A stretch of DNA of 64,000 bases, from the IMG/VR virus record IMGVR_UViG_3300023257_000007, positions 124,001 through 188,000 of that record. One strand, written 5' to 3'. How positions within the stretch are numbered: position 1 is the first letter of the stretch; each line of letters opens with the position of its first letter. Both the position numbers and the translations under genes were made by a program. This document shows, piece after piece, positions 7,074 through 63,216 of this stretch. Below the pieces are notes generated by a model that was not told the origin of the DNA, searched no databases, and saw nothing but the letters and a program-made list of their open reading frames with translations.

Positions 7074-8711
7074 CTATGGTAAATACTTTTTAGTAAATTC
7101 ATCAGTTTTTTGAGGATTTGTATTAAAATCCACTTGCCATGTTTCTGAACCCGATTCACCACCTGCAGCAACATTTGAAGGGTTAGTAACATCACCAACA
7201 ATAGAACCAACCTTATAAATTCTCTTATATCCATTATTAAAATATGTCATTATTTCCTGTGCACCCATATTTCTACCCAATCTACAATCTATTTTAACAC
7301 CAATATTAATTGGAGAATCATTAAAAGATAATTGGTTTGCAAAATCAATATTAACTTTATCAACAACTATATTGTTAATTGATAATATAGGCATATATGG
7401 ATTACCAACTGTTATATGCCATGGTGTTGAAGGTAAACCTGTCATAACAGATACAGACCCTCTTAAAGGCCATTTATATTTATTTAATGTACTTGCTAAT
7501 AAACTACCAAGAAGACCATTTGCATTAATACTATCAACCCTTTTTACTGCATCCAGACCACTTTTCTTCACTTGAATTAACACATCATCAGATGTTAAAC
7601 CTACTTCATCATTTTTTTCTTCTGTGATAGTACCAGTTACTGAACCAATCACCTCTTTAACTATTTTAATAATAGCTAATACAAAAGCTCTTACCAATGT
7701 TTTAATAAACCCTAACCATGCATCAACAGAACCACTATTTGTAGCAGCTAATAATTTTTTTATAACAGAACTATTAGAATTAGATAAAACATATCTAACA
7801 TCTGATGTACCCATTTTTAATAAATTATCAATTATATCATTCATTGCAATACCTGGATCAATATTATTAATATATTTTTGTTCATAAGATGTTTCTAAAG
7901 AAATATCTAAATTAGATACTAAACCAAATGAATTTGCATCACGAGTAGCACCTTCTTGTAAAACGTTAGGATTACCAAAAGGTATTTCTTGAGAATCAAA
8001 TCCACCAGATGATTTTCCACCTTCTTCTTTATTTCTTTCTGTCATACCCATAGCCTTTAAAAACCCAAACAATAAACCTTGTGACCAACCAGGTATAGGT
8101 ATAGATTTACCAGCATCAAAATCAAATTCATTTGATAATACTTCACCTAATATTTCATGTACCATTTTTGTTTCTGTTATCCATTTCTCATTAAAAGATA
8201 AATTAAATAACTTTTCATCACCATCTTTAACCCATCCAATAACAGTAGATATAGGTTTTTTGGCATTTTCGGACATTTTCGGCCAATTATTTAAATTAGT
8301 AGGAACAATAGTACCTTCTCTATACCTTCTCAAAATTACTAATCTATTTATAGGATAAACACCTAAATCTTTTAAATATACAAAATCGGCTGCTTTTAAT
8401 TTCATAGCATTATTGTCTTTGAAATATTCAATTAATTTTAGATACGGGTTAGCACCTGTATTAGGTTTACTGAAAGAATTAATATTTATCCTATTTGAGA
8501 TAGCTTTTGTACCAGCCAATTTAGCACTAGTGCCTTTAGTTGGTTTATATACATTAACTCTCTCACCACTATCAGATTTTTTATATAAATCACCTGAAAC
8601 CCAGCCTGATCCCGGGTTATCATATATACTACCTTTATTATCCTTATTATTAAATTGGGATGGATCTAATGAAAATAAAAACTTTAATTCTGTTCCATGA
8701 CTTCTAAACAT
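7074..8711 (-). CDS. Putative baseplate/tail-tube cap protein (gp48/gp54-like)
   Basis: First gene of the baseplate operon; tube-fold-like C-terminus (PWHITVGNP...IVVDKVNIDF...PINIGVKIDCR); late-type promoter upstream. Confidence 0.4.
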   Translation of the reverse strand: MFRSHGTELKFLFSLDPSQFNNKDNKGSIYDNPGSGWVSGDLYKKSDSGERVNVYKPTKGTSAKLAGTKAISNRININSFSKPNTGANPYLKLIEYFKDNNAMKLKAADFVYLKDLGVYPINRLVILRRYREGTIVPTNLNNWPKMSENAKKPISTVIGWVKDGDEKLFNLSFNEKWITETKMVHEILGEVLSNEFDFDAGKSIPIPGWSQGLLFGFLKAMGMTERNKEEGGKSSGGFDSQEIPFGNPNVLQEGATRDANSFGLVSNLDISLETSYEQKYINNIDPGIAMNDIIDNLLKMGTSDVRYVLSNSNSSVIKKLLAATNSGSVDAWLGFIKTLVRAFVLAIIKIVKEVIGSVTGTITEEKNDEVGLTSDDVLIQVKKSGLDAVKRVDSINANGLLGSLLASTLNKYKWPLRGSVSVMTGLPSTPWHITVGNPYMPILSINNIVVDKVNIDFANQLSFNDSPINIGVKIDCRLGRNMGAQEIMTYFNNGYKRIYKVGSIVGDVTNPSNVAAGGESGSETWQVDFNTNPQKTDEFTKKYLP

Positions 8712-8730
8712 TATTTGATATAAATTTTAA

Positions 8731-8742
8731 TTATATATTAAA
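8731..8742 (-). promoter_or_regulatory. Candidate late promoter TTTAATATATAA for the baseplate operon
   Basis: The same TT[AT][AT]TATATA motif precedes most structural and leader-bearing genes (for example near 21250, 24082, 25502, 31388, 33297, 39418, 51195, 55680, 56553, 60835). Confidence 0.6.
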
Positions 8743-8771
8743 ATAATTAAACTGAAACAAAAAGAAAAAAA

Positions 8772-9185
8772 TTAATAATCTCTTATAATCTGTGAAGTAT
8801 CAAAATTATGAAGCTCACCTAAGATTTCTTCCTGTGTTTCAGAATCATCTTGAAAATCTTCATATAAATATAAAGATCCAAACTCAACTGGGAACTCAAA
8901 AATGTTCTTTATCTTAAATAAATCTGCAATATTTAATTCGGGATTTTCAAAATTTGGAATGTAATATATATCTTTTTTCTTTCTTAAAGAATGAACAATT
9001 TTAGTGTATACCAATAAATTGAAGTAATCTCTATATTTTTTAATAGTAAAATCAGGGCCTTCTTCATCTTTTAACTGATCTATTTGTTGTTTTATATCTA
9101 TAATAACTTTGTTCCTAATTCGATTTACTTTCACGTATTTATCAAATTTCTTTCTGTTCTTGCAAAATACTATATAAAATTTCAT
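8772..9185 (-). CDS. Hypothetical protein
   Basis: 137-aa ORF with a TATATA motif upstream. Confidence 0.65.
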   Translation of the reverse strand: MKFYIVFCKNRKKFDKYVKVNRIRNKVIIDIKQQIDQLKDEEGPDFTIKKYRDYFNLLVYTKIVHSLRKKKDIYYIPNFENPELNIADLFKIKNIFEFPVEFGSLYLYEDFQDDSETQEEILGELHNFDTSQIIRDY

Positions 9186-9365
9186 TTAAACATCAATCAT
9201 TTTTAGTTATATATAAGACACCCCAGGTCCAAAATTAACCAAAGTTCATGACAAAAAATGTCATTAATTAAAATTAAAAATTTCACCAACTTTTTCACAA
9301 CTTCAAAATACAAACTTGACAATCTGTGAAATATAATCTTTCACACAAAAATTAATTCATTATGA

Positions 9366-10610
9366 ATGGCTAAAAGTACAGGAAAATTTGACTTTTCCAA
9401 ATTAACAAGCGTAGTTGAAGATATTTCAAAAAAGACCGCTATTATGATTGAAAAAGATAATAAACAAACATCTTTTATTGATACTGGTATTTATACTTTC
9501 AATGCACTACTTTCTAAAAATATTCGAACTGGCGGTATTTCAAAGAATAGAATTACCGTATTAGCTGGACCCCCACAATGTGGTAAATCTTATTTATGTT
9601 ATAATATTGCTAGAAATGCTCAAAAAGAAGGATATAATATTATTTATATTGATACTGAATTTTCAATTGAAAAACATGAAATGGAAAAATTCGGTATAAA
9701 TATTAGCGAAGATAGATTAATGTTAATAAGATCAAATAAAGTAGAAGATCTTAAAATAATGTTAACGCAACTTCTAGATAATCTTAAAACACAAAAACAA
9801 GATGGTGTTGATATAGGAAAAACAATCATATTCCTAGATTCAATTGGTCAATTAGCATCCAATAAAGAAGTAGAAGATGCTTTAGGCGGTAAAATTAAAG
9901 TTGATATGTCTAGAGCAAAAGCTATCAAATCTCTCCTTAGAATTATTAATAGTGATCTTGGATATTTAGATATTCCATTAGTAGCTACTAACCATGTTTA
10001 TATGACACAAGATTTATATCCAGTTGCTGTAATGGGCGGTGGTGAAGGAATCACATATACTGCATCTACTGTAGTTTATATGAGTATAGCTAAACTTAAA
10101 ACAGGTGAAGAAAATAAAGATTATAAAATGTATGTGTCTGATATTGGGCAATCTGGTGTTATAGTAACTGCAAAATCTAGAAAGAATAGATTAGCAAAAC
10201 CAATGAAAATTAAATTCGAAATTAATCATAACGAAGGAACAAATCCTTATAGAGGACTTGAAGTATTTTGTACTCCAGAAAACTTTGATAAAGTTGGTAT
10301 TGCAAAAGTTAAAAAAGTAGAATCAGGTCGAGGTAAAGCTAAGACAATAGAATATCAAGCTGGTGGTACTAAATATTACGTTAAACATTTAGATCAAAGT
10401 TTTTATGAAAAATCATTATTTAATGGTAAAATTTTCACTGATGAAGTAATTACTGCTCTTGAACCAATCGTTCAAACATACTTTGAATATTCATCATATG
10501 ATGAACAACAGAAAATCATGGATAATTTGGACTCTGAACACGCAAAATTTGAATCAGATACTGATTTTGATATTGATGGTGATAATGATGGGCAACTTTT
10601 TGATAAATAA
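9366..10610 (+). CDS. uvsX: RecA/UvsX-family recombinase
   Basis: Walker A GPPQCGKS, YIDTE, Walker B IIFLDSIG, 'MSRAKAIKSLLR', TNHVY, MGGGEG. Confidence 0.92.
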   Translation: MAKSTGKFDFSKLTSVVEDISKKTAIMIEKDNKQTSFIDTGIYTFNALLSKNIRTGGISKNRITVLAGPPQCGKSYLCYNIARNAQKEGYNIIYIDTEFSIEKHEMEKFGINISEDRLMLIRSNKVEDLKIMLTQLLDNLKTQKQDGVDIGKTIIFLDSIGQLASNKEVEDALGGKIKVDMSRAKAIKSLLRIINSDLGYLDIPLVATNHVYMTQDLYPVAVMGGGEGITYTASTVVYMSIAKLKTGEENKDYKMYVSDIGQSGVIVTAKSRKNRLAKPMKIKFEINHNEGTNPYRGLEVFCTPENFDKVGIAKVKKVESGRGKAKTIEYQAGGTKYYVKHLDQSFYEKSLFNGKIFTDEVITALEPIVQTYFEYSSYDEQQKIMDNLDSEHAKFESDTDFDIDGDNDGQLFDK

Positions 10611-18683: not shown

Positions 18684-18697
18684 AATCAGGATTTTCT
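18668..18697. terminator. Bidirectional terminator between convergent genes
   Basis: AGAAAATCCTGAT-taaa-ATCAGGATTTTCT overlaps both stop codons. Confidence 0.75.
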
Positions 18698-20134
18698 ATT
18701 TTGTAATTCCGTTAATTTAAAATAAAAATCTCGAGCTATTTTCTTTAAGTAATATGTACCCATTCCTTGCATGCCTGTTTTCTCGTTATCTGGATCTGGT
18801 ACTCTTTTACCATTTAAGTAGTTTAAACCACTAACATTTGTAATAAATTTATGACCCCCTGAATTTGATTGAATAATATCCCATGCCGTAACATACATAT
18901 CATTTAATATCTTTTTATCATTTTCACTTAATTTTATAAAAGGAACAGTCATCACAGCATCTAACACATTTTCAGATTGCTGATCTAAACCAACAATTTG
19001 ATCTTTAAATAAAGAAACTAAATCTTTAAATCTAAAACCAAATTCATTTGAAATATCTTTTGGAGCTTTATTTCTTGTACCTTTAGCAGCTCTGACCATA
19101 TCTTGTTCAGATATTCTCTTAATATTTTTAACAGTTATTTTAACGTTTTGTAAATTAGTTTTGAAATTATTTAATACATCTTGTGCAATATCGCCCAAGT
19201 TAATATGTTCAAATTTTGGATCTTTCTTTTTAAAAGGATTTGTTGAAACTTGAACTAATCCCATTGGCCAAGCCATAATAAAAAAATTAGCATCTGGATA
19301 TAATTTAAATGAAGCATATCTATCATATGAACCAGTATCAAACATTCTAGGACCACCATATTGCATCATTATATCATTCTTAACAACTAATTTTTTAAAA
19401 TTTTTAAGATTGTCAAAATATGTATTTGCATGTTTTTCAATTGATTCAGCAGGATCTAAACCTAAATCTTTAGCTAATTTCTTAATTTCTAAAAACATAC
19501 TAACTAAACTAGGTTTTGAATTTTCAACTAAACCTACTAAAAAACCAGGTTTATTTTTATAAGCCAATAATAGTTTATTTACAACAAATCCTAATTTCAT
19601 TCTATTTGATTTAGTTGATATATCTTTATTGGTTTTATAGAAAAATTGAATTACATCAGAAGGAGTTATATCTTGACTTGCATAATCTGCACTATCAACA
19701 GTATCAATCATATTAACATCTTCTGCTGAAAATATATCATTAGGTGAAATTTCACCGGAAATAGTACCAGCATTTGATTTAGCTTTCTTAAAATGTGCAG
19801 ACATAGTTTCTACGCCTATTTGCATATCATGGTGGTCTGTATGAATAACAAATTCTGTTTTACCGTGAGCAAAATCTACTAAAACAGCTAATGTACCGGG
19901 TTGTGGTTTATCTAAATGATATTCCATACCACCATATTGAATAGTATGATATCTTACTGTTTTAATACCATATTGTTTCAAATATTCTCTCATAGCAATA
20001 GCTGATGTAACACCATCTAAATCTACATGAAAATATATTTCAGCTTCATCAAAAGTTTTAGATATTTTTTTAATATCACGTATGCCAGATTCATTTAATT
20101 TCAGAAACTGATTATAACTTTCTAATAAACGCAT
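18686..20134 (-). CDS. DHH/DHHA1-family phosphoesterase with CTS-like leader
   Basis: HVDLDG (motif I), VDF (II), DHH (III) and a C-terminal SGGH; likely start MRLLESYNQFLKLNE (20134) rather than 20146. Confidence 0.8.
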   Translation of the reverse strand: MRLLESYNQFLKLNESGIRDIKKISKTFDEAEIYFHVDLDGVTSAIAMREYLKQYGIKTVRYHTIQYGGMEYHLDKPQPGTLAVLVDFAHGKTEFVIHTDHHDMQIGVETMSAHFKKAKSNAGTISGEISPNDIFSAEDVNMIDTVDSADYASQDITPSDVIQFFYKTNKDISTKSNRMKLGFVVNKLLLAYKNKPGFLVGLVENSKPSLVSMFLEIKKLAKDLGLDPAESIEKHANTYFDNLKNFKKLVVKNDIMMQYGGPRMFDTGSYDRYASFKLYPDANFFIMAWPMGLVQVSTNPFKKKDPKFEHINLGDIAQDVLNNFKTNLQNVKITVKNIKRISEQDMVRAAKGTRNKAPKDISNEFGFRFKDLVSLFKDQIVGLDQQSENVLDAVMTVPFIKLSENDKKILNDMYVTAWDIIQSNSGGHKFITNVSGLNYLNGKRVPDPDNEKTGMQGMGTYYLKKIARDFYFKLTELQNRKS

Positions 20135-20138
20135 GAAA

Positions 20139-20696
20139 TTAAACATTTTTTAACAGATTCATTAAATCATCATTTAATATCTGTAACACTTTTTTACCAT
20201 TTAGTTCAATTTGTGGGACATTCTTAATTATAGAAAAAACATCATTGCCCTCAACAACTATTTCACTAAATAATTTATCAAGTTGTGGATTTCTTCTATA
20301 ATAAGAAACTAAATTATCAACAAACTCTTTTAATTTTAATTCATGATTTTCATTATATTTCAAAACTAATAAAGATTTATCAGTTTGCTCTATTATCATG
20401 AAATGTAAATCATCTTTAGAATGATTATTTGATTCTAAAAGAGAATAAGCATCAGAAGGTTTATAATTATCTAAAAATTTAGCGACTTTGCCATTAAGTT
20501 TAAACCTAGGTTTTTTCCTACTAACATTTGGATCTCTGTTATCTCTTCTTGGAGGTTTAGATAACTCTTGAGCCATTGCAGCCAAATTAGCCTTCTTAAT
20601 CGGAATTTCCTTTGGAATTTCAGGAACAGAACTAGTAATAGTTTTTGAACTACCACCACCTGTTGATGCAAAATCACTATATTTTTTTAAGCCCAT
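20139..20696 (-). CDS. Hypothetical protein with leader-like N-terminus (MGLKKYSDF)
   Basis: 185-aa ORF in the same operon as the DHH gene. Confidence 0.65.
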   Translation of the reverse strand: MGLKKYSDFASTGGGSSKTITSSVPEIPKEIPIKKANLAAMAQELSKPPRRDNRDPNVSRKKPRFKLNGKVAKFLDNYKPSDAYSLLESNNHSKDDLHFMIIEQTDKSLLVLKYNENHELKLKEFVDNLVSYYRRNPQLDKLFSEIVVEGNDVFSIIKNVPQIELNGKKVLQILNDDLMNLLKNV

Positions 20697-25516: not shown

Positions 25517-26491
25517 ATGAAAATATATAAATTTAATTCTTTTATATTTGAAAAAAGTTCTCTAACTTCAATTGGAATACCAAATGAAGTTCTTAAACAA
25601 ATTCAAATAGATTACGAATTACCACATAATATAAAATGGGAAGAACTTACATTTTCAAACACCATCAAATCATCACTAGAAAATGATGACAAAAATCTAT
25701 ATATTGAAATAAATAAAGAAGGCACTAAAGTAAACGTAATAACATCAATAAGAAAAAATAAAAAGAAAATCTACATATTAGACGAATATAAATATAATTT
25801 CGGATGGGAAAAATCAGAAAGAATTGATATAACATTCGCACCAATTGTACAAAAAATGTCATTTAAAAGTATATATTATCACTGTGAATCTAAAAACTTT
25901 AAACTCACATCCAAAAAAGAAAGATCACTTGAAAATATAAATGTCCAATATGAAAATTTTAATACACAATTTAAAAAAGACTTTACTAACAAATTCATAA
26001 GTATAATTAAAAAAGATAAATATAATCTACTAGACAATACTATAAAAGAAAACGGTCTAACAACATTTGATGAATATTTATATGATTTTGAATCACAATG
26101 TTCAGAAGAATTAAAAAGATATTTAACAATTAAAGAACTTATTTCTAGATATGGTAAAGATAAAATATTTAGATCATTTATGTATTTCATTAAAACAAAT
26201 AACTTAAAATTATTTGAATCAAATACTTCATTAAAACAAACAATAAGTTTATTCGTTGACGATTATTGGTATGCAATGGACGAATTAGAAGGAGTATTAC
26301 ATGACTTAGGATATAAAAGAATGAGTGATAGTGGTAAAGATGTTCTTTTTGTAGAAAAAGAAGGCGAAACTAGATTATATTGGTACGGAAAAGCTTTTGA
26401 AATTAAAAATGAACCACATTATAAAATGCCAGAAGACTGGGCAACTTTTGTTAAAGAAATAACACAAAATTTTGAAGATATAAAAATATGA
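25517..26491 (+). CDS. Hypothetical protein with CTS-like leader (MKIYKFNSFIFE) and an internal second leader-like motif
   Basis: TTAATATATA 5 nt before ATG 25517; internal LKLFES near 26204. Confidence 0.7.
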   Translation: MKIYKFNSFIFEKSSLTSIGIPNEVLKQIQIDYELPHNIKWEELTFSNTIKSSLENDDKNLYIEINKEGTKVNVITSIRKNKKKIYILDEYKYNFGWEKSERIDITFAPIVQKMSFKSIYYHCESKNFKLTSKKERSLENINVQYENFNTQFKKDFTNKFISIIKKDKYNLLDNTIKENGLTTFDEYLYDFESQCSEELKRYLTIKELISRYGKDKIFRSFMYFIKTNNLKLFESNTSLKQTISLFVDDYWYAMDELEGVLHDLGYKRMSDSGKDVLFVEKEGETRLYWYGKAFEIKNEPHYKMPEDWATFVKEITQNFEDIKI

Positions 26492-29437: not shown

Positions 29438-30091
29438 TTATCTACTTAATAAACCTATTTTAGAATAAACATTTTTCCAATCATCCTCATTGTTTATTAT
29501 ATATTCAGGTTCTCTGGAATCTAAAATAGTTTCAGCATTTTCAATTGTTACATAATCAACGGCTTTTATTTTAATTCCATCATTAATTCTAACTCTATAA
29601 GTTTTAAATGTTTCACTCAAAATTTGTGCTATATATAAAGGAAAAGTACCATCATCAATATACATAACAGCAGAAAGTTTTGCATTTGGCATCTCAACGT
29701 ACAACTTATTCTCTGTATCTATCAAATGATATTTGGATAAGCTTTCTTTAATTCCGTTATGTTTAATAACATCACTATTCTTAACATAATAATAAGAATC
29801 TGTAGAAGTTTCTTTAAAAACTAATGATGCATCAATTTTTTTACAGAATTGATTTAACATTTTTCTTTGAAAATTGCCTTTATCTAATAAATTACTATTA
29901 ATTAATCCACTAAACTTATATTTATCTTCTAATATAACAACAATTTTTCTATTTGCATTATCATAATACAAACAATCTATATCCAACATATAATTAGATC
30001 TAGATAAACTTCTATGTCCTTCAGAAAAGACATTACTTTTACCCCATTTTCTTTTATAATCTTCAAATATGTTTTTAATTCTTTGTATCAT
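29438..30091 (-). CDS. Hypothetical protein
   Basis: 217-aa ORF overlapping the end of the CCA gene. Confidence 0.6.
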   Translation of the reverse strand: MIQRIKNIFEDYKRKWGKSNVFSEGHRSLSRSNYMLDIDCLYYDNANRKIVVILEDKYKFSGLINSNLLDKGNFQRKMLNQFCKKIDASLVFKETSTDSYYYVKNSDVIKHNGIKESLSKYHLIDTENKLYVEMPNAKLSAVMYIDDGTFPLYIAQILSETFKTYRVRINDGIKIKAVDYVTIENAETILDSREPEYIINNEDDWKNVYSKIGLLSR

Positions 30092-31382
30092 TACTCATAT
30101 ATTCATTTTTAAATCTTTCGTATTCTATTCTTCTCATTTCTTCACCTAAAGCCTTTCCATGAAATCCCTTTTGCATTAACTCTTGTGAATTTTTTAAAAA
30201 ACCATCACTACAATATTTAATGAAAGCTTCAGTTATATTTGAATATAATCCCTGAGACTTAGTATATAATCTTAATATATTATCATCAATACCAAATCTA
30301 GTCTTATTTTTAGCTAACTGATAAATATTTGTCATCCACATATCACCTGTAGATTCTTCTATTATCTTTTTCTCATAATTAAATAGAAAAATAATATAAT
30401 CAATCAAATTATTTTGCAACTTACAATCAATTAATTTGTTGGTTAAATTCGAATCATCTGAACTTGGAGTCATCAAAATAGGTAAAATTATCCTATTATC
30501 GAAAAGTGAAAAATTCACCCAAGGAACCTCTATTTTAATTCCAGGGAAAATCTCATCAAACATATCAAATTCATCAAGTAATCTTAAATATTTAATAAAC
30601 ATAGACATATCATTTGCATCTCTCGCATGACCTAACATTTTATTCCATTCACCATTTTTAGTGTCAAATATTCTTTCAAATGAAACATCATCTTTCTCAG
30701 ATATTCCATGTAATCTATGATCCATAGTTAATGCATTCTTTACATTTTCACTTATTTTACCATTAGTTCTTGCACAAAATCTAAACAATCTTAATATTCT
30801 CAATCTATCTTCATTAAACCTTTCATAAGGTTCACCAACAGTTTTAATAAGTCCTTTCTTTAAATCTTCAATACCACCAACATAATCAATGATTTTCTTA
30901 CTACCAAGATCATAAAACATTGCATTAATTGTTAAATCTCTTCTTAAAACATCATCTTGTATTGTAACATTTGAACCAATTTCTACTTTTTGATCATCAC
31001 CTTTAACATCTCTACCTTTAGCAATATCTTTTCTATAGGTTGCTAATTCATGACCTAATGGTTCTAAATCTGTATAAATTCTTAATACTCCAAAATTTTG
31101 TCCTTGCTCTTCTTCAGAAACATAACCACCATTCCAATCTTCTAATATCTCTTTAGATTCATCTGGCATTGCATCTGTAACTAAATCAAAATCTTTAGGT
31201 TTTTTTCCTTGTAAATAATCTCTAGGAGCGCCACCTACAACATATAATTCCTTACCATACTTTTTAAATCTTTCATATATTTCTACAATATCTTCGGGTA
31301 TGAACATATCTTTAGCTTTAACAGTTTTCTTTTGCATTTTATTTTCATTTAAAAATTCAGAATATTTATACAATTTATTCAT
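30075..31382 (-). CDS. cca: CCA-adding enzyme / tRNA nucleotidyltransferase (class II NTase) with CTS-like leader
   Basis: VVGGAPRD...DFDLVTD, ELATYR, RRDLTINAM, RFNEDRLRILR; N-terminus MNKLYKYSEFLNE. Confidence 0.85.
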   Translation of the reverse strand: MNKLYKYSEFLNENKMQKKTVKAKDMFIPEDIVEIYERFKKYGKELYVVGGAPRDYLQGKKPKDFDLVTDAMPDESKEILEDWNGGYVSEEEQGQNFGVLRIYTDLEPLGHELATYRKDIAKGRDVKGDDQKVEIGSNVTIQDDVLRRDLTINAMFYDLGSKKIIDYVGGIEDLKKGLIKTVGEPYERFNEDRLRILRLFRFCARTNGKISENVKNALTMDHRLHGISEKDDVSFERIFDTKNGEWNKMLGHARDANDMSMFIKYLRLLDEFDMFDEIFPGIKIEVPWVNFSLFDNRIILPILMTPSSDDSNLTNKLIDCKLQNNLIDYIIFLFNYEKKIIEESTGDMWMTNIYQLAKNKTRFGIDDNILRLYTKSQGLYSNITEAFIKYCSDGFLKNSQELMQKGFHGKALGEEMRRIEYERFKNEYMSNDTKN

Positions 31383-31402
31383 GACAATATATATTAAATT
31401 AA

Positions 31403-31431
31403 AAAACCATCGTTTAAATTACGATGGTTTT
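31403..31431 (-). terminator. Intrinsic terminator after phoH, directly upstream of the cca promoter
   Basis: AAAACCATCGT-ttaaatt-ACGATGGTTTT. Confidence 0.7.
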
Positions 31432-31449
31432 ATTATAAGACATTATTTA

Positions 31450-32196
31450 TTAATCTTTTAAATCATATCTTTGTAAAATTCCTGCAATTATAGGATTTCT
31501 AACAATATCTTCAGGTCTATCTACTATAAATTCATAAACTCCAACACCTTTAGCACCTTTCATTAAAGTGAATGCGTCATATAAACCACTACTATTCTTT
31601 TTATTATACCTATCAGTTTGTTCTAAATCACCACTAATAATAAATTTACTATTAAAACCAATTCTAGTTAAAACAGTTTTCATTTGTTTTGGTGTACAAT
31701 TCTGTGCTTCTTCAAATATTAAAATACTATTATCTATATTCCAACCTCTTAAATAAGCTAAAGCTAAAGGTTTAATTATTTCAGATTCAACTAATTTTTT
31801 TCTATTTTCAATGCCTATTATTTTGTCAATAAGTTTATAAGTTGAATATAAATAAGGTTCTAATTTATCTTCTAAATCACCAGGTAAATAACCTAATTTC
31901 TCTTCTGATTCAACAGCTGGTGTAATAATATAAATATTATGATAATTGTTAGAAGAATCAGCTAATAATTGTAATGCCTTAATTATACTAATATAACTTT
32001 TTCCTACACCGGCAGGTCCTATACAAATTGATATTTGATTACTATCAATTATTTTTATAAAATCTTTTTGTTTTTCATTTTTACATCTAATCTTAACTTT
32101 TTTGCCATATAATATATCTGCAAGTTGTTTATTATTTAACAACTCTTTATCTTTACTTTTTACATTTAATTTTGTTGTTATTATTGGTTTTCTCAT
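31450..32196 (-). CDS. phoH: PhoH-family ATPase
   Basis: GPAGVGKS, PAVESEEKLGYLPGDL, LAYLRGWN, FEEAQN, TRIG..SK.IISGD, RNPII. Confidence 0.92.
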   Translation of the reverse strand: MRKPIITTKLNVKSKDKELLNNKQLADILYGKKVKIRCKNEKQKDFIKIIDSNQISICIGPAGVGKSYISIIKALQLLADSSNNYHNIYIITPAVESEEKLGYLPGDLEDKLEPYLYSTYKLIDKIIGIENRKKLVESEIIKPLALAYLRGWNIDNSILIFEEAQNCTPKQMKTVLTRIGFNSKFIISGDLEQTDRYNKKNSSGLYDAFTLMKGAKGVGVYEFIVDRPEDIVRNPIIAGILQRYDLKD

Positions 32197-32399: not shown

Positions 32400-32633
32400 A
32401 TGAAATATTTAAAGACATACGAAGAATTAACCGATTCACAAAAAGAATCTGAATATAATAAAAAATTAGAAGAACTAGAAGATAAAAAAGAAAGACTTCA
32501 GAAAAAACTCCAATATTCAGAAGATGTAAGAGATCCAGAAAAAACAGAACAAATAAGAAAAGAAAAGAAAGAAGAAATTGAAAAGAATAAAAAGAAAAAG
32601 AGTTCTGAAGATCAAAACTCTTTTGTATCCTAA
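32400..32633 (+). CDS. Small charged protein with CTS-like leader (MKYLKTYEEL)
   Basis: 77 aa, K/E-rich; TTTAATATATAA upstream. Confidence 0.65.
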   Translation: MKYLKTYEELTDSQKESEYNKKLEELEDKKERLQKKLQYSEDVRDPEKTEQIRKEKKEEIEKNKKKKSSEDQNSFVS

Positions 32634-33274
32634 TTTTTACATAATAAATCTGCAGCACTAGTAGAAGCATATGCTTTAGGTTTACATTCAACCTTAAATC
32701 CATAACCACACAACATACCCATCATAGCTTTATAAACTTTATTAGATTTATTTCTACCATTTCCATCATCTGAATTAAAATCAACATGTAATACAGGTAA
32801 TCTATAAGGCATAGAACCATCATATTCATTTAATTCATGATCTTTAAAATATTTACCTTTTAATTTTTCATCTAAATATAAAGCAAGTTCAAGTAAATAT
32901 AAACCTTCTGTATATAATCTATTAAAAATTGCTTCATTAGAACCTGAACTAATTAATTTTGAATTATCTGGTTTATTTTCTTTATACCATTGATCAAATT
33001 TATAACCTCTAGCAGCTAAATATTTAGGTATATTAATTCTTTTAAAAATACAATGCGCACCATTATGCTTAAAATTATCATAAAATACGATAGTTATAGC
33101 ATATTGTGTTTTTCGTCTCTTATTTTTAGAATCACAACCAACAGAAATTGTAACATCACTTGGTACTGAATAATTACCAGATTTATCCCCTAAATATTCC
33201 ATTATGTAATCAATTTCATTATCAACGAAATCACCACCAAACCTTTTAAAGTAAATTTTATTTTTCATTTTCAT
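32630..33274 (-). CDS. RNase H-like YkuK (DUF458) family protein
   Basis: VGCDS, AITIV, LHVDFN, SN, G.LCGYG...CKP.AYAST.AAD. Confidence 0.7.
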   Translation of the reverse strand: MKMKNKIYFKRFGGDFVDNEIDYIMEYLGDKSGNYSVPSDVTISVGCDSKNKRRKTQYAITIVFYDNFKHNGAHCIFKRINIPKYLAARGYKFDQWYKENKPDNSKLISSGSNEAIFNRLYTEGLYLLELALYLDEKLKGKYFKDHELNEYDGSMPYRLPVLHVDFNSDDGNGRNKSNKVYKAMMGMLCGYGFKVECKPKAYASTSAADLLCKN

Positions 33275-33335: not shown

Positions 33336-34487
33336 TTAATTAGGAAAGTCTAAATAAATCTTTCTATCGTCCCGTATAACAGAAATCACTTTAACTTTCA
33401 CCTCTTTTCCCACTTCCAACTTTTTATCAGCCTTCTGTATATAAGTGTTCTGAATTAACCCTGTTGTCTCTGGATCCAATTCTACTAAAACACCAAATGA
33501 CTTGATAGATTTAACCTTGCCATCTTTAATTTGTCCAACTTTAATCTTATCCCACAAAGATTCTCTCAAAAATTGAGATAAAATAATCTTATTACCTTTC
33601 AAAATATCTCTAACATAGAATGTTACTTCCATACCAGGTTGAACTTGATCAATCTTCCATTCAGGATTAAGATTGACTTTATGTATCATACCAGTTAAAC
33701 ATTCATTAAACTGAACAAATACACCGTAAGCCATTGTGCCTGTTACTGTTCCTTTATAAGCAATTGTTTTCTTAAGTTTACTAATTTCTACTGGAATTAG
33801 AGTTTTAAGATATTTCTTGCGTGAAACAACATATACACCTTTCTCTTGTTGTAAAGATTCTAATAACACATTAATTCTACTACCAACTAAATTACTAGAT
33901 TGTTCATCTGTTAATTTATTAATTCCAGCCAAAATATTTGGCATAAAAGATTTAATAGTTATATTATCCAACTCAATATCCAACATGAAACCTGCTGGTA
34001 TTCTTTCAATAACTTTTACAACTAACTGACGATTTTCTTTATAATAATCTTTCAATTTGTGCGAAACCTTCGCTTTAATAAGATCTGTTATTGAACCTTT
34101 AATTTGAAACGGATTATCTATCACCTTTATTATCATAACATCAATTTCATCACCAACCTTCAAATTTTGAATAATTTTAAAATCAGATAACTTATTCTCA
34201 ACATAAATACTATCTTTATAATTTATATTAATCTTAAGTTCCCTTTTAGAAATCGTTTCAATTTGACCAGTAACAATGTCACCTATTTTCACCTCATTAT
34301 ATGAAGATTCATTTTCAGACATCATATCTAACATCTCTTTATACTTATCATTAAAAGCTGATGTATCCATATCATCAGTCCACTTGATAATTTTATTATC
34401 TTCTTTCTCTAATTCATTCCAAAACGCATCATCATCAATAATCGATGTATAATCTAAATTTTCTGGATTTTCTGAATTTTCTTTCAT
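33336..34487 (-). CDS. rpsA: Ribosomal protein S1-like multi-S1-domain protein
   Basis: About four S1 repeats: VKIGDIVTGQI, LKVGDEIDVMI, YKGTVTGTMAYGVFVQF..CLTGMIH, KDGKVKSIKSFGVLVEL...TTGLI...GKEVKVKVISV. Confidence 0.8.
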   Translation of the reverse strand: MKENSENPENLDYTSIIDDDAFWNELEKEDNKIIKWTDDMDTSAFNDKYKEMLDMMSENESSYNEVKIGDIVTGQIETISKRELKININYKDSIYVENKLSDFKIIQNLKVGDEIDVMIIKVIDNPFQIKGSITDLIKAKVSHKLKDYYKENRQLVVKVIERIPAGFMLDIELDNITIKSFMPNILAGINKLTDEQSSNLVGSRINVLLESLQQEKGVYVVSRKKYLKTLIPVEISKLKKTIAYKGTVTGTMAYGVFVQFNECLTGMIHKVNLNPEWKIDQVQPGMEVTFYVRDILKGNKIILSQFLRESLWDKIKVGQIKDGKVKSIKSFGVLVELDPETTGLIQNTYIQKADKKLEVGKEVKVKVISVIRDDRKIYLDFPN

Positions 34488-47819: not shown

Positions 47820-50800
47820 TTATTGAAAACCTACTGATACTTGTGATTGTGTTGATATATAATTAGCCGTTCTGTGTTGTTTCATATTAAATATCAAAGT
47901 AAATTGGAACGGTCTAATACTGTTCTCAGTTTCTACAAATATTTTCAACGGTCTCTTTAATATACGTGAAACAGGTTTTTCAGTTGGATTTATAGTAAAT
48001 GAACTTCCACTTACAGCATCAAACTTAAAATATAAATTTATTGGTATAATCATCTCTTCTTGACCATTTATTAATTTCAACTTTTCCTGTCCTGTGTCAA
48101 TTAAATCTGATATATCTATAACTAATGGATATATACTAGATAAAAATGCATTTTGGTTTGTTAATGTCCCATCAGTCCAACTAATACCAGTTAACAAATT
48201 GAACGTATAATCATCTCTAGTAAAAGTTGTCCCTGTTAATCCAAGATTTGAACCATATGTTCCACCATCAGCATTTAACCAATTATAAGCAGTTGCTTTA
48301 TCAGACTCTGTTATACCTGAATATAAATTCTGTCCGTTGTGATTATCAGAAAACCAAAGAAATTGATTGTCTTCTTGATTATGTAGATAACCATCAGCAT
48401 CAATATAACAGGATGAATCATCTGTAAATTGAAAGAAACTATTTGTTCCACCAACTGTATAATTTCTATCAGAAAATAAACCTAATGGGTTATTTTGTGC
48501 AATATTCTTCAAACTAATATAATAATCTTTTATAACATAAATATTATTATAATAAATTCTATCTGCAGTAGCACCACTTATTTCTCCATAATCTTCACAT
48601 TCAACTATAATATTAGTTTCCGAATTATTACCAATTTCAGTTTCTGTTGTACCTTTAAATAATGTAACAAGAAGTTCACCTTTAGCTCTACTAACTTGTT
48701 CTTCTAAAGAAGATATCTTATTTGTTAATGTTTCTAAATAATCAAATAAATTAATTAAATTACCTTGAGCATCTCTAAATGACGTTGCCAAAGTTTTATC
48801 ATTATGTGCATAATAACTATCATTTTGAGTAAAACTATCTCTAACGTGTCTATAAACACCTTTAGCATCCATTTCATTATCAAATTCAACTCTTACTGAT
48901 TCTTGACTATTTTGTAATGTTATTAATTGAGAATCATCATTAGTGTTTTCATATTCATCAGGAAAATCAATCTTAACAATATCCGACCATTCTGATTCAA
49001 TCAAAGCATCGGGCCAACCAACCTCAGAAATAGATTTAACTTTTATTTCAATAGATTCATTTTCCTTAATGGGAATATCTACTTGATTTATATTTGGTTT
49101 TTCTGCATTTGCAACATCTTCAACAACCCAATACCACACATTTTTGGTACTATCAAAACTTCTCTCTCTAGGTTTTGTTACATATTCTTTCCAATTAGAA
49201 AAGAAACCATTAGTATTTTGTGTTTGTAATATAGTTTGATTACTTAAAGGTATTTTTTGACCAGATGCAGTTGTTATAACTGTATTAGTTGGTGATGGTG
49301 TCATACCAATAGAAGGTGCATTAATTTGTGAACTTCTAGGAGTAAATTCAGCACTACTACTTTCAGGATTATTTATAACCGATCCACTTGTTGTTGGATC
49401 TGGTTTTAAGTTTGGTTGCGTTAATAAACTTGTATCAATAGTTAAACCTTGTTGACCAGATAAATCTTCTAAATTCACAGTAGGTTTAATATCAAAACTC
49501 TCTATTGGATTAGTTTGACCATCTTTAGCACTATATCTATACTGAATTTTAAATGCAACCACATCTTGTATTTTATCTTCAAGACTTCTAGCCATTGGAA
49601 TATCAAAGAAACCTCTTAATCTATATTTAGGGCTTGCAGATAAAGTTGTAACAACATTAGAAATTTGATTAACAATTGAGCCATATTGTTTAGATTCACT
49701 CTCTTGTTGTGTTATAAGTCTATTTAACTCATTTTGAGATTTATTTTTTTCACCAATACTTTTATATTGTTTTGTGTTTAATTCTTTATTTTTTTCAATA
49801 ATAGAATCATTTAATTGGTTTAATCTAGACTTAATAGATTCTTTTCTTGTATGTAAATCTTTCTTTTCTTTTGAATTTCCATTATCTGTAAGATGTTTAT
49901 TAATTTGTACAACTTTAAAATTATCTATTTCCAATACTGGTTTATTTGGAATTAATGCCTCATCAGTTGGTGTTTGTCTTCTTATTAAATCTTTTAATAA
50001 TTTACCATAATCATATATATTATCTAAATAATAACTTGTCAAATCTATCGTATTATCCGTATTTAATACTAAATCATTTGTATAAAATGCACTACCTTGA
50101 GACCAAACACTACCAATTATATTATTATCAGTATTTACAGGTTTCATAAATACAAGATTATATTCATTATAACCCACACCAATATTAACAGATTTATCTA
50201 ACTCACCAGCTGAGTATATCTTTAAAACATCTGTTCCAACAGGAATAGGATCATAACCTTCAACTCTTTCAACTATTATCTTAGGCGTAGATGAAGCTTT
50301 ACTAATTTCAATTATTTTATATCTAGTATTACTTTCTTTTTTATTTATTATTATTTCATCATTAATAGATAATTCTTTATTAACACCATCTTTAGTTCTA
50401 TAAGTTAGAGTATTTAAGTGATACCAAAATTTCTTTCTTATTGTATCATCCTCTGTATTTAAAACACTAAAAAAACCAACATTATTTAATGTTTGTAAAT
50501 TAATATCATAAATATCTTCATCCAAATATTTATAAGGGTCCAAATTATCAACAACACCTGGTTGAGCCAAGTACCAATTAATAAAAGTGTCATAATTAAT
50601 ATCTGATTTATTCAAAAATGTGTCTATAAAACTATTTAAAGAATTTCTTCCTGTCTCTGTTAATTGTCCATAACTACCAACTTGAAATTTTACAATATGT
50701 CTCCTTACCAAAACTTTCTTATTCCTATCATCAATTTTACCAGTTAAATCAAAATTTACATGTATGTTAGGGTTAATTAATTCTTCGAAAAACCAGTTAG

Positions 50801-55030: not shown

Positions 55031-55651
55031 TTAAAATTTTTGGATAAACCAAAAATTATCTCTTCCCCAAGTGGTCTTTACAATTTTCCCTTTAGCTTGT
55101 AAATCAGTTAAAACATTATTAACATCAGCTTCAGAAAAACCAACATGACCAGCAATAGTATAAGAACTCATCTTAACACCTTTATCTTTCATAACATGTA
55201 AAACATCATTACCTATTTCATTAATATCTTTAGAAATACCTTTAGTTTTTCCTAAAGTATTTAAACCTTTTGGTCCTTCACTTTGTAAATCATTAATAGT
55301 CTTAGAAATACCTAAAACTGGTTTTGCAATAGCTGGTCCTTTAGCTTTTGTATCATTCAATTGATCTAAACTATAACCTGGTTGATTACCTTCAAATTTT
55401 TGAATAAATTCAAATTTATCGTGTCCTAATATATTATTCTTAACGATATGACCACCGTCTTCTAGACCTTTTAGTATATTGTTAACTTGAGCTACAGTAA
55501 CAGCACCACCCAAAGCGGTTTTAATTGACATAGCAGTTGCAGGAACGCCTTTATCTTTCATTGCTGATATAACTTGATCTTTTAAATCACCTATTTCTTT
55601 TGCTACTTTATTAGCTTCTGTGATAAACTCTGTTAATGTTTTAATTTTCAT
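55031..55651 (-). CDS. Tandem winged-helix (Z-alpha-like) protein with CTS-like leader
   Basis: Leader MKIKTLTEFITE|A; two similar domains each containing MKDKGV...VNN(I/V)L..L...G.IVK...F.FIQKF. Confidence 0.6.
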   Translation of the reverse strand: MKIKTLTEFITEANKVAKEIGDLKDQVISAMKDKGVPATAMSIKTALGGAVTVAQVNNILKGLEDGGHIVKNNILGHDKFEFIQKFEGNQPGYSLDQLNDTKAKGPAIAKPVLGISKTINDLQSEGPKGLNTLGKTKGISKDINEIGNDVLHVMKDKGVKMSSYTIAGHVGFSEADVNNVLTDLQAKGKIVKTTWGRDNFWFIQKF

Positions 55652-56645: not shown

Positions 56646-59600
56646 ATGACGAAAAAACTTGAAGAACGATATAAAAAATTAACCCATCGTGAGCATATTC
56701 TACAACGACCAGAAACATATATTGGTTCAACTGTCACAGAACTTAAAAAAATGTTCATTATCGAAGATATAAATGATATTAAAAATTTAAATATTGTAAA
56801 TCAAATGGTACATTATAATCCAGGTTTTATTAAAATATTTGATGAAATAATTACAAATGCATCAGATCATTATATTAGAACAAAAAAAGTCAAATATATT
56901 AAAGTTATTATAGAAAAAGATCATATTTCAATTGAAAATGATGGTCCTGGCATACCAGTAGAAATACATAAAAAAGAAAAAATTTATGTACCAGAATTAA
57001 TATTCGGTCACCTTTTAACTGGAGAAAATTATGACGATACAGAAGAAAGAATAGTAGGCGGTAGAAACGGATATGGTTCAAAACTCACTAATACATACTC
57101 AACGAAATTTATTGTAGAAACTGCAGATGGTACAAATAAATATAAACAAGAATTTTCAAATAATCTTGAAATAAAAGGTAAACCAAAAATTACAAAAAAT
57201 AAAAAGAATTTTACAAAAATAACATTCTATCCAGATTTTAATAGATTTGGTCTAACAGAAATTACAGAAGAACTTCAACAAATAATGCTGAAAAGATGTG
57301 TGGACATATCTGTATATTGTCCAAATGTAAAAGTATATTATAACAATACATTAATACCTGTTAAAACATTTAAAGACTATATGAAAATGTATGTTGAAGA
57401 CCAAGACTATTTTTATGAAAAAGTAAACACATCATGGGAGATTGGAGTATCCAAATCCGAAGACGATTTATTCCAACAAATATCAATGGTAAATAGTATA
57501 TCAACTTATCAAGGTGGAACTCATGTTAATTTTATAACTAAACAAATAACAAAAGGTGTTGCTGATATCTTAAATAAGAAATATAAAAATATTAATATTA
57601 AAGAAGCAGATATTAAAAGAAACCTTTTCATATTCGTTAATTCTAAAATAGTAAATCCTTCTTTTGATACACAAACAAAAGAAAACCTAATAACAAGAAT
57701 GACACAGAAAAACACTGAAGGTGTAAACATATCAGATAAATTCTTGAAATTGCTAGCTTCTTCAGAAATAATGGAGAGCGTTCTTAGATATATCGAAGCA
57801 AAAGAAAAATCATCATTGGCTAAAGAAAGTGGTAAGAAGGTTTCTAAAGTTAGGATTAAAAAACTTGACGATGCAAATAAAGCAGGTACTACTCAATCAC
57901 AAAAATGTATGTTATTCTTAACAGAAGGTGATTCAGCTTTATCTACGGCTTTATCAGGATTCGCAGTAACAGGTAGAGATTATTATGGAGCATTCCCCTT
58001 GAAAGGAAAACCTTTGAATGTCAGAGACATCGCAATGGATAAAATACGAGCCAATGAAGAAATTAAAAACATAGTATCAGCATTAGGATTAGAATATGGT
58101 AAAAAATATAAATCAACAAAAGATCTGAGATATGGCAAAGTTGTTATTATGTCTGACCAAGATTTGGATGGATATCACATTAAAGGATTATTAATAAATC
58201 TATTTGATACATTTTGGCCCGAATTATTACAATTAGATTTTTTATATGAATTTATAACACCAATTGTTAAAGTAACAAAAGGAAAACAATATAAATATTT
58301 CTACAGATTAGAAGAATATAGAAAATGGAAAAATAGCTCAGATACAAAAGGATTTTTTGTTAAATATTATAAAGGTCTTGGTACAATAGAACCAAAGGAA
58401 TCTAAAAGATTTTTCAAAAATATCGCAAAACACTTAATAAGATTTAATTATAAAGATGAAGAAAAAACCGAAAATCTTATTGATTTAGCTTTCAATAAAA
58501 AAAGAGCAGAAGATAGGAAAAAATGGTTACTTAACTATAATCCAGCCAACGAAATAGATAAATTCACAACAAAAACAACTATTGATTCATTTATAGACGA
58601 TGAACTAATAGAATTTTCAATGGCAGATAATATAAGATCAATACCTTCATTGTTAGATGGTTTAAAACCATCACAAAGGAAAATCTTATTTACAATGTTT
58701 TTGAATAATTATAAAAATGAAGTTAAAGTCAATCAACTAAGTGGTTCTATTATTGATAAATCAGCATATCACCATGGACCTGCTAGTTTAGAACAAGGCA
58801 TAGTTGGAATGGCACAAAATTTTGTTGGTTCCAATAATATAAACTTATTAGTACCAAATGGTCAATTTGGTACAAGAATAACTGGTGGTAAAGATAGCTC
58901 TGCGTCAAGATATATCTTCACAAAATTAAATAAAATATCTAATGTTATTTTTGATAAAAGAGATACAGATGTTTTAAATCACAATTATGATGATGGTAAG
59001 AAAATAGAACCTGAATATTATATACCAGTAATACCAATGATACTTGTAAATGGTGCAAAAGGAATCGGAACAGGTTATTCTACAGATATTACACAATTTA
59101 ATCCTGTTGATATAATAGAATATTATGAAAACAAACTCACTAAAAAGAAAACAGACAAAATAATAAAGCCTTGGTTCAATGGATTTAAAGGTGAAATTAA
59201 ATGGGATGAAGAAAATGGTAGATATCTAACAAAAGGTATTTATGAGAAATTAAATGCAACAACAATTAGAATAACAGAATTACCAATCGGTACCTGGAAT
59301 GATAAATATTTTGATCATTTAGATAAATTAATTGATAGAAAAGTTATTAAAGATTATACCAAAAATTGTACTGATATAGAAATAGATATTACTATTAATA
59401 TAGGTAGAGAAGAAATCCAAAATATTGATAGTATTAATAAAGTTTTTAATCTTATTAGTTATATAAGCCTAGACAACTTAAACGTGATGGATAAAGAAGG
59501 TAAAATAAAGAAATATAAAGATCAATATGAAATATTAGATGATTTCTTAGTTATAAGATTAAATTATTATAAATTAAGAAAAGAAAATATGTTAGCTAAA

Positions 59601-62931: not shown

Positions 62932-63216
62932 TTATCTTTTAACATCTCTAATAACTTTATCCATTCCTTTTTTCATATCTTCTATTAAAGATAATATAGT
63001 TTTATATTGTGGATCTTTTTTATGATATTTATCTAATTCTTGATATAATCTTTGTAATTCTTCTTCAAAATCTGGTCGTTTATTTTGTTTGCCAGTTTTT
63101 ATTCCTTTAGTATAAACAGTTCCTTCCTCATCTACAAACCTATTTCTCCAATTCCAACCTATAGGCCCAATTTTATTTTCATTAACATAATCATCAAAAT
63201 TACAAATATGTTTCAT
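62932..63216 (-). CDS. Hypothetical protein with CTS-like leader (MKHICNFDDYVNE)
   Basis: 94-aa lone - strand gene within a + strand block. Confidence 0.65.
   Translation of the reverse strand: MKHICNFDDYVNENKIGPIGWNWRNRFVDEEGTVYTKGIKTGKQNKRPDFEEELQRLYQELDKYHKKDPQYKTILSLIEDMKKGMDKVIRDVKR

Follow-up and report, generated by a model that had tools for sequence, protein, structure and literature searches.

A T4-like N-terminal tag on a CCA-type tRNA nucleotidyltransferase of an uncultured huge phage, with possible loading into the capsid

Capsid targeting peptides and tRNA nucleotidyltransferases

Capsid targeting through a short N-terminal peptide is known experimentally only from phage T4 and its close kin, where it loads a few small anti-restriction proteins. 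The T4 capsid targeting sequence (CTS), MKTYQEFIAE, is cleaved once and is sufficient to load foreign proteins (PMC8442874), with the internal head proteins (IPI-III) joining the prohead core through the CTS and the prohead protease gp21 cutting after Glu in sites such as ITE and LTE (PMC5694885). In giant phages (the propeptide-bearing head proteins of phiKZ and SPN3US) and in T4 Alt, enzymes are likewise loaded into the head through N-terminal propeptides that a gp21-related protease removes after a Glu, however these propeptides are longer and lack a common address motif, and no RNA-repair enzyme is among the reported cargo. CCA-adding enzymes are common in jumbo and huge phages, without any claim of packaging (PMC7824862; PMC7162821).

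Here we examined a 64,000-nt window (positions 124,001 to 188,000) of the 345-kb IMG/VR record IMGVR_UViG_3300023257_000007, from an uncultured huge phage of a salt lake, in which a sequence-only reading had noticed a CCA-type enzyme behind a capsid tag and inferred that late expression and packaging would allow tRNA 3' ends to be restored at the start of the next infection. The observation is borne out by our analysis. The interpretation is supported in part, with the enzyme assignment, the private promoter and the T4-like character of the tag supported by sequence evidence, whilst packaging, cleavage, expression timing and use in the next cell have not been shown. A megablast of 12 kb against the phage collection gave no near-identical match.

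The nucleotidyltransferase gene and its flanking signals

The open reading frame at 30075..31382 (-) encodes an intact class II tRNA nucleotidyltransferase of 435 residues, starting MNKLYKYSEFLNENK, with the Pfam PolyA_pol head domain (PF01743) matching residues 46-179 (30846..31247, -) at an E-value of 1.1e-29, and the PHROG tRNA nucleotidyltransferase family matching at 3e-45. Across 62 orthologues the residues of motif A (Gly50, Gly51, Arg54, Asp55, Asp64, and Asp66, the GGxxRD...DxD pattern with its two catalytic Asp residues), motif B (Arg147, Arg148, and Asp149), motif C (Asp166, Gly170, and Asp173, the D..GG..D pattern), and motif D (Glu191, Asp192, and Arg195, the EDxxR pattern of the nucleotide-selecting template) are invariant, with motifs C and D lying at residues 166-198. 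The AlphaFold2 model (pLDDT 88.6, pTM 0.87) shows a full head-neck-body-tail fold, with full-length Foldseek matches to 1MIV, 3H37, 5HC9, 4WBY, and 3AQM at a probability of 1.00, whilst residues 1-20 are modelled with low confidence and are detached from the fold.

The enzyme resembles the class II CCA-adding enzymes of B. stearothermophilus (1MIV), T. maritima (3H37/5HC9), and Planococcus (6IBP), and those of jumbo phages, in its motifs A-D, its fold (TM about 0.6), its size, and its occurrence as one copy per genome next to many tRNA genes. There is one PF01743 protein per genome in this record and in two complete relatives. In contrast to these enzymes, it has a roughly 25-residue N-terminal extension that carries the tag, a divergent body and tail, and no HD domain. 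The enzyme of the T4-like Aeromonas phage CC2 starts directly at MEKYLVGGAVRD and has no tag, and the homologue in Lak-B4 is also untagged.

Upstream of the gene, an intrinsic-terminator-like hairpin with an 11-bp stem and a U-run (31399..31435, -; centroid -12.9 kcal/mol, z -2.5) closes the gene of a PhoH-like ATPase (31450..32196, -), and is followed by the promoter-like sequence TTTAATATATAT (31387..31398, -), then TGTC, then the ATG, such that the motif ends 4-5 nt before the start codon and is of the short-spacing, leaderless-like class. The 8-mers ATATATAA and AATATATA are 9-10-fold enriched in the 60 nt upstream of ORFs, the 62%-identical orthologue has the same promoter spacing, and S1-domain, PhoH, and CCA genes are neighbours in that relative also. 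The same motif precedes the major capsid protein, protease, and tail/baseplate operons, but not UvsX, DnaB, RNR, or SSB, which is consistent with the late type proposed in the sequence-only reading. However, this designation rests only on which genes carry the motif, a topoisomerase II gene carries a variant of it, and no RNA run was listed beside the DNA runs, which are salt-lake and marine metagenomes, leaving synthesis at the time of head assembly undecided. A simple search with T4 gp55 against this record and the relative LR745206 found no gp55-like late sigma factor, and a gp55-looking 125-residue ORF next to the head genes (C1:14229-14606) gave no PHROG hit, thus the late transcription machinery was not identified.

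The N-terminal tag and the heptad array of the head protease

Residues 1-13 of the enzyme (31344..31382, -) form a tag, MNKLYK-YSEFLNE, followed by NK, with a putative prohead-protease cut after Glu13. The tag shares with the T4 CTS a position at the extreme N-terminus, a start of the MK/MN kind, the identical spacing of aromatic-x-x-aromatic-[IL]-x-Glu, and an [LI]xE end of the kind that gp21 cuts, although three extra residues lie between the Met and the heptad. The T4 internal-protein genes and the T4 gp23 cleavage site FGSFLTE|A fit the same heptad. A search of the literature found no paper containing the tag strings, and none linking a capsid targeting sequence to metagenomic huge phages.

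The tag exceeds chance, with the strict heptad [YF]xx[FYW][ILV]xE starting 21 of the 479 proteins of the record, about 12 times its internal rate, and a looser core pattern found in the first ~16 residues of 36 of 479 ORFs, compared with 6.7 +/- 2.5 when residues 2-16 are shuffled and 1.4% of internal 16-residue windows. Of the 64 copies of the strict heptad in 102,317 residues, 21 start within the first 12 residues of a protein, and 13 of the 43 non-N-terminal copies lie in a single protein, the head protease. The tag is selected at the protein rather than the nucleotide level, with synonymous codons in tags no more constrained than genome-wide (z -2.5, towards more diversity), and 28 of 53 tagged genes having no promoter motif within 120 nt. 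At least 81 of the 120 closest orthologues keep the strict heptad and 99 the loose one, whilst about 10 lack it, so the tag is modular.

What is new here, and lies outside the window, is that the 811-residue head-maturation protease/scaffold ORF carries 11 tandem YSEYIAE units with a 14-residue period at residues 305-451. This ORF matches phrog_207 at 1e-29 and aligns to T4 gp21 over GEFDHP, VSSRAAG, and DAVADP, and the phage additionally encodes a gp23-family major capsid protein, a gp20-family portal, and a head-closure protein. The link of the heptad to the prohead core or scaffold is at the level of sequence only. Folding the full protease/scaffold ORF with residues 1-45 of the enzyme gave no verdict (score 0.00, partner pLDDT about 30) and is not evidence either way. 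The propeptide of the major capsid protein, WM[AS]EYAE..[MI]NE|N, is conserved between G000 and LR745206, and ends in a conserved [MI]NE|N. The array is conserved in LR745206 and LR756502 and degenerate in LR756500, whilst in phage 121Q this part of the ORF corresponds to a separate scaffolding protein, and neither T4 gp21 and gp22 nor the 121Q scaffold has a heptad array.

Related huge phages with the array also have the tags (about 10% of ORFs), with densities of 8.7, 10.1, and 3.2 tags per 100 kb in three array-bearing genomes, compared with 0.2 in Lak-B4 (26% GC), which has no array and almost no tags. This comparison rests on four array-bearing genomes and one without the array, all of them related. 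A reversed-pattern control gives 0-0.5.

About 17 tagged ORFs lie in the window. Amongst these are an enzyme at 18686..20146 (-) with a weak, below-cut-off DHH-family match (26.1 bits against 28.1) and a tag from Met5 (MRLLESYNQFLKLNES), whose orthologue in LR745206 is tagged too, a winged-helix protein at 55031..55651 (-; MKIKTLTEFITE...), a small ORF at 62932..63216 (-) whose tag ends like that of the CCA enzyme (MKHICNFDDYVNE|NK), and a small ORF at 32400..32633 (+; MKYLKTYEEL...) with its own promoter motif. In the record as a whole, tagged enzymes include NUDIX, RNase H, and DeoC, and a weaker, below-cut-off Tpt1-like match. In LR745206, a complete relative, the tag sits on an Rnl1-type RNA ligase, a 2H-phosphoesterase plus DEDD exonuclease, and a DHH protein. 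Reciprocal best hits with LR745206 comprised only 112 pairs, with a widened pattern giving false positives, and were used qualitatively only.

Interpretation of the tagged enzyme

The reading we favour, with a probability of roughly 0.55, is that the gene encodes a complete class II tRNA nucleotidyltransferase, most likely a CCA-adding enzyme, transcribed from its own promoter of the class that drives the head and tail genes, probably as a leaderless or near-leaderless mRNA, and carrying a detachable N-terminal address of the T4 CTS kind. In this view, the heptad YSEFLNE imitates the YSEYIAE unit of the scaffold-like extension of the gp21-family protease, the tag would dock the enzyme into the assembling prohead core, the protease would cut after Glu13 (L-N-E|N), and the roughly 49-kDa enzyme would stay trapped in the capsid and enter the next cell with the DNA. 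There it, or the unpackaged pool late in infection, would add or restore the 3' CCA on the phage's 35 or more CCA-less tRNA transcripts and on any tRNAs trimmed by host defences. Our analysis establishes the gene, fold, catalytic motifs, promoter motif and terminator, the non-random tag and its conservation in orthologues, the array in the protease ORF, and the co-occurrence of tags and array across genomes, whilst docking, cleavage, packaging, ejection, timing, and nucleotide specificity are inferred, the proposed steps by analogy with T4 internal proteins. No proteomic, transcriptomic, or biochemical datum exists for this phage, and neither cleavage of the tag, the trimmed protein in virions, nor loading of a foreign protein was assayed. 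Furthermore, about 10% of ORFs are tagged, far more than the known T4 CTS cargo, and the set includes a DeoC aldolase and RNase H, for which packaging has no obvious use. Only about a third of the tags end in a canonical [LI]xE, with many ending in ES or having no Glu at all. Additionally, tagged proteins are mostly acidic or neutral and lack the basic character of T4 internal proteins, with a median pI of 5.9, the same as untagged proteins, and a pI of 5.4 for the CCA enzyme.

The best-surviving alternative, which we consider less likely, is that the enzyme is an ordinary cytoplasmic tRNA-maturation enzyme, with the N-terminal motif serving another purpose, such as stability control, binding to a phage chaperone, another localisation, or processing by the head protease without retention in the capsid. 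The record carries 35 tRNA genes, about 32 of them without an encoded CCA, making maturation of the phage's own tRNAs an obvious additional or alternative role, whether or not the enzyme is packaged, which the sequence-only reading had missed. The housekeeping-type enzymes in the tagged set, and a tag frequency that is high for capsid cargo, also favour this view. However, it does not explain why the only internal concentration of the heptad in the proteome is the head protease/scaffold ORF, why the motif matches the T4 CTS and the gp23 cleavage site, or why tags and array occur together in the array-bearing relatives and are both missing from Lak-B4. The maturation role itself is compatible with the favoured reading.

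It is possible, though doubtful, that the enzyme is instead a poly(A) polymerase, or an A-only or CC-only adding enzyme. The best PDB profile match is E. coli poly(A) polymerase I (3AQK/L/M; 3AQM at 4e-45, 158 bits), of the same superfamily fold, closely followed by CCA-adding enzymes (6IBP at 2e-39, 139 bits), Foldseek ranks poly(A) polymerase, CCA-adding, and A-adding structures about equally, and no PolyA_pol_RNAbd domain was called by Pfam. The sequence-only reading was right that specificity cannot be fixed from sequence, and addition of CCA to tRNA was not assayed here, with support for it being circumstantial only. Against this alternative, the single PF01743 enzyme per genome lies beside dozens of tRNA genes lacking all three CCA bases, and the poly(A) polymerase signature [LIV][LIV]G[RK][RK]F after motif A, described by Martin & Keller (2004), is absent, with EQG(K/Q)NF aligned to LVGRRF of 3AQM. 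A long loop between motifs A and B is also present, which is shortened in CC-adding enzymes.

It is improbable that the tag is not part of the protein, with transcription starting downstream of the first ATG and translation beginning at Met16 (31335..31337, -), a possible internal start that would give an untagged isoform. Whilst only 4-5 nt separate the promoter motif from the first ATG, and Met16 is conserved only in the two closest relatives (P0002 and P0003), 35 ORFs in the record have the same 0-9 nt spacing, with a sharp peak at 4-6 nt and an ATG exactly there, the pattern expected of leaderless mRNAs. Moreover, the tag is kept as a peptide pattern in at least 81-99 of 120 orthologues, most of which have no nearby internal Met, and tags also occur on operon-internal genes with no promoter.

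Least likely is a nucleotide-level signal (a translation start region, regulator binding site, or initially transcribed sequence) or a by-product of composition, for although the genome is 25% GC, the codons for K, Y, F, L, N, I, and E are AT-rich, and tagged genes are somewhat enriched in the short-spacing promoter class (9 of 53 against 26 of 426), this is opposed by the shuffles, the lack of extra constraint on synonymous sites, the swapping of aromatic positions between Y, F, L, and W, the near absence of tags from Lak-B4 at the same GC content, and the reversed-pattern control.

A bolder reading, which is tentative, is that a clade of 0.46-0.74-Mb phages (the non-Lak part of the ‘Mahaphage’ group) uses this address, mirrored by the array in a protease-scaffold fusion, to load about a tenth of its proteome into the capsid. 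The cargo would include a ready-made RNA-repair and anti-signalling kit of the CCA-adding enzyme, an Rnl1 ligase, a 2H-phosphoesterase/exonuclease, the weak Tpt1-like match, NUDIX, and DHH, co-injected such that tRNA damage and nucleotide alarm signals are countered before any phage gene is expressed.

The signal described here is of the same kind as that of T4, but appears on roughly 10% of the ORFs of the largest known phages and is tied by sequence to their head protease/scaffold. The tag-plus-array pair would be a compact, testable model of how cargo is recruited to a prohead core, and a possible tool for loading proteins into capsids. If the tag works as in T4, it gives a sequence-only way to read the injected proteome of uncultured huge phages, and would also mean that these phages deliver tRNA-repair and signal-degrading enzymes as proteins, which bears on how they survive tRNA-targeting and nucleotide-signalling defences.

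Genomic setting and the nucleotidyltransferase gene

The window occupies C1:209476-273475 of a 344,634-bp linear virus record (25% GC, CheckV completeness about 48%), with identical DNA found in salt-lake and marine metagenome runs. The closest deposited genomes are the 462-735-kb uncultured phages LR756501/3, LR745206, LR756502, LR756504, and LR756500, which include the genomes over 634 kb assigned to the "Mahaphage" clade, with predicted Bacteroidetes hosts (PMC7162821). A possible Bacteroidetes host, or at least a Gram-negative one, is consistent with three adjacent small ORFs at C1:47939-49198 that have lipoprotein-type signal peptides (MKRILLIL..SC). Outside the window, the record encodes a T4-type head module comprising a gp23-family major capsid protein (C1:3566-5329), a portal protein, a head-closure protein, and an 811-aa ORF (C1:5467-7902) whose first 200 residues are a head-maturation protease, with this domain aligning to T4 gp21 over the GEFDHP, VSSRAAG, and DAVADP segments. 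Two members of a family of roughly 550-600-aa ORFs with similar N-termini (M..T/N.K I.I....), located at C1:1788-3440, 8010-9752, 95580-97226, 100168-101979, and 130817-132418, flank the major capsid protein and protease genes; each member has its own promoter motif, and they may be homing-endonuclease-like insertions. Two tRNA genes with a CUA anticodon (amber suppressors) also lie outside the window, at C1:112614-112688 and 140629-140701, although TAG ends 41 of the 479 called ORFs and the large genes read through under the standard code, which may reflect partial or stage-specific TAG reading as in the related Lak phages.

The ORF at 30075..31382 (-) is intact, encodes 435 aa, and begins MNKLYKYSEFLNENK. 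Pfam identifies the PolyA_pol head domain PF01743 (1.1e-29, residues 46-179) and PHROGs identifies tRNA nucleotidyltransferase (3e-45), with the catalytic motifs A (GG..RD...DxD), B (RRD), C, and D (EDxxR) invariant in an alignment of 62 orthologues. The AlphaFold2 model built on this alignment is confident (pLDDT 88.6, pTM 0.87) and shows the full head-neck-body-tail fold, whereas residues 1-20 are low-confidence and detached, and Foldseek matches CCA-adding, A-adding, and poly(A) polymerase structures over the full length. Upstream, the end of the PhoH gene is followed by an 11-bp hairpin with a U-run, then TTTAATATATAT, then four bases, and then the ATG. The observation made in the sequence-only reading, of an intact class II nucleotidyltransferase head with its own promoter beside the ATG, is therefore correct. 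Directly upstream of the gene lie PhoH (31450-32196), an RNaseH-like (PF04308) protein (32630-33274), and an S1-domain protein (33336-34487), all on the minus strand, with S1, PhoH, and the CCA gene also neighbours in the 62%-identical relative (locus L027), where PhoH is inverted.

The 8-mers ATATATAA and AATATATA are 9-10-fold enriched in the 60 nt upstream of ORFs, and 145 of 479 ORFs have the motif within 120 nt. Across the whole record, the spacing of the motif (AATATATA[AG]; examples in the window at 25517 (+), 31382 (-), and 36447 (-)) to the ATG is bimodal, with one peak at 15-24 nt (major capsid protein 21, protease 18, large tail/baseplate genes 19-22) and the other at 0-9 nt, mostly 4-6, comprising 35 ORFs including this gene. 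The short class resembles leaderless mRNAs, and the 62%-identical orthologue has the same 4-nt spacing. Describing the promoter as "late-type", as the sequence-only reading did, is reasonable but rests only on the gene classes that carry it, as a search with T4 gp55 found no homologue and no RNA run was listed. The motif is absent before UvsX, DnaB, RNR, and SSB, however a T-ending variant lies 34 nt before a single 1087-aa topoisomerase II (56646-59909 (+)), which fuses the parts that T4 splits into gp39/gp60 and gp52.

The N-terminal tag and its sequence link to the head genes

The N-terminal tag exceeds chance expectation, with a loose pattern found at 44 of 479 N-termini compared with 0.9% of internal Met positions, and a heptad-like core found in 36 N-termini compared with 6.7 +/- 2.5 after shuffling of residues 2-16 and 1.4% of internal windows. 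The strict heptad [YF]xx[FYW][ILV]xE has 64 copies in 102,317 residues, 21 of which start within the first 12 residues of a protein. Synonymous codon choice inside tags is not more constrained than elsewhere, more than half of the tagged genes have no adjacent promoter, and the composition-matched relative Lak-B4 (26% GC) has 0.2 tags per 100 kb, compared with 8.7 here and 10.1 in LR745206, with reversed-pattern controls giving 0-0.5. The signal therefore acts at the protein level and is specific to this lineage, and is not an artefact of AT-richness or of start-codon context.

The tag on this enzyme is both conserved and modular. Of the 120 closest homologues (42-82% identity, mostly on phage-like contigs), at least 81 have the strict heptad and 99 a loose one within the first 22 residues, with a typical N-terminus of MK(L/I)K(K/R)YxQFIxENK followed by ..IP.P.DI. 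About ten begin directly at the conserved IP.P.DI segment, and one untagged orthologue that was examined on its contig has no upstream extension. An untagged isoform from an internal start is conceivable, as Met16 (31335-31337 (-)) directly follows the tag (..NENK-M-QKK), however this residue is conserved in the two closest relatives only. The orthologues in LR745206 and LR756502 start MILKKYKMFLES and MIITKYAKFLES, whilst the homologues in Lak-B4 and in the T4-like Aeromonas phage CC2 are untagged.

The capsid targeting sequence (CTS) of T4, MKTYQEFIAE, is cut off once by the prohead protease and suffices to load foreign proteins (PMC8442874), with all T4 internal head proteins joining the core through a CTS and gp21 cutting after Glu at sites such as ITE and LTE (PMC5694885). 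The T4 heptad YQEFIAE, the T4 gp23 maturation site FGSFLTE|A, and YSEFLNE of the present protein share the spacing aromatic-x-x-aromatic-[IL]-x-Glu. What is new here is that the 811-aa protease ORF of this phage contains, at residues 305-451, eleven tandem 14-residue units (Y-S-E-Y-I-A-E-N-L-D-K-N-I-x), each holding Y(S/A)EY(I/V)AE and ending in a gp21-type I-A-E site. Thirteen of the 43 heptads not located at an N-terminus sit in this single protein. The units lie in a long scaffold-like extension fused to the protease (C1:5467-7902; also L031:1501-3624 and L032:1498-3597, the loci recorded for the same fusion). In E. coli phage 121Q the aligned region is split into a gp21-like protease and a gp22-like scaffolding protein, and the array therefore lies in the scaffold-equivalent part of the ORF.

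The array is conserved in LR745206 and LR756502, and degenerate in LR756500, whose tags read MKYIKEYEEF(I/L/V)xE. It is absent from Lak-B4, which has almost no tags and whose protease requires TAG=Q to be read (three in-frame TAGs), and neither T4 gp22 nor the 121Q scaffold has such an array. An 83-aa ORF of LR745206 (460435-460686 (-)) carries three units of the same 14-aa array (YEDYIAE, YSEYISE, YCDYLCE). The propeptide of the major capsid protein contains the conserved segment WM(A/S)EYAE..(M/I)NE|N in this phage and in LR745206, an ending that is the same as the ...FLNE|NK of the enzyme. In addition, a 70-aa ORF matching part of the Gp23 family lies immediately downstream of the tagged NUDIX gene (C1:49263-49475 and 49472-50173), and LR745206 has a 157-aa protein (291407-291880) that copies the N-terminal propeptide of the major capsid protein (..WMSHYAEMHSINEN..), both of which may represent a second route into the capsid.

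Tagged proteins and the role of the enzyme

In this record the tagged proteins include a NUDIX hydrolase, a DeoC-family aldolase, an RNase H, and a winged-helix protein, together with weak, below-cut-off matches to a DHH-family protein and to Tpt1, the latter on an ORF inside a tRNA cluster, and many small ORFs of unknown function. In the complete 635-kb LR745206, 99 of 915 ORFs are tagged, and those with Pfam matches include the CCA enzyme, an Rnl1-type RNA ligase, a 2H-phosphoesterase (LigT/Acb1-like) fused to a DEDD exonuclease, a DHH plus winged-helix protein, an M15 peptidase, and a Zn protease. The tagged set resembles an RNA-end-repair and nucleotide-signal-degrading kit, which fits the proposal of the sequence-only reading that the enzyme restores tRNA ends in the next cell, although no enrichment test was performed. 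In contrast, the major capsid protein, portal, protease, tail and baseplate proteins, RNR, helicases, topoisomerase II, UvsX, PhoH, and the S1-domain protein are untagged.

Ordinary tRNA maturation is an obvious additional or alternative role. ARAGORN identifies 35 tRNA genes in the 345 kb, none of which is followed by CCA and only about three of which may end in it, and there is one bona fide PF01743 protein per genome here and in two complete relatives. The enzyme would therefore be needed to finish the phage's own tRNAs, several of which lie behind ORFs that carry the same promoter motif. With regard to specificity, the best profile-to-PDB hit is E. coli poly(A) polymerase I (158 bits), ahead of CCA-adding enzymes (139 bits), however at the position of the poly(A) polymerase signature LVGRRF the family has EQG(K/Q)NF, and a long loop lies between motifs A and B. 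We consider full CCA addition likely, on the strength of the tRNA context.

The interpretation offered by the sequence-only reading, of a capsid-tagged enzyme made late and used in the next cell, is partly supported. The capsid-tag reading now rests on an internal sequence link to the head protease/scaffold and on the co-occurrence of tags and array across genomes, whereas packaging, cleavage, timing, and use in the next cell are all inferred, and we place the probability of the capsid-address mechanism at about 0.55. The maturation of the phage's own tRNAs is compatible with packaging and does not depend on it. The wider possibility, that a proteome-wide address loads an RNA-repair and counter-defence kit into the capsids of these phages, is more tentative.
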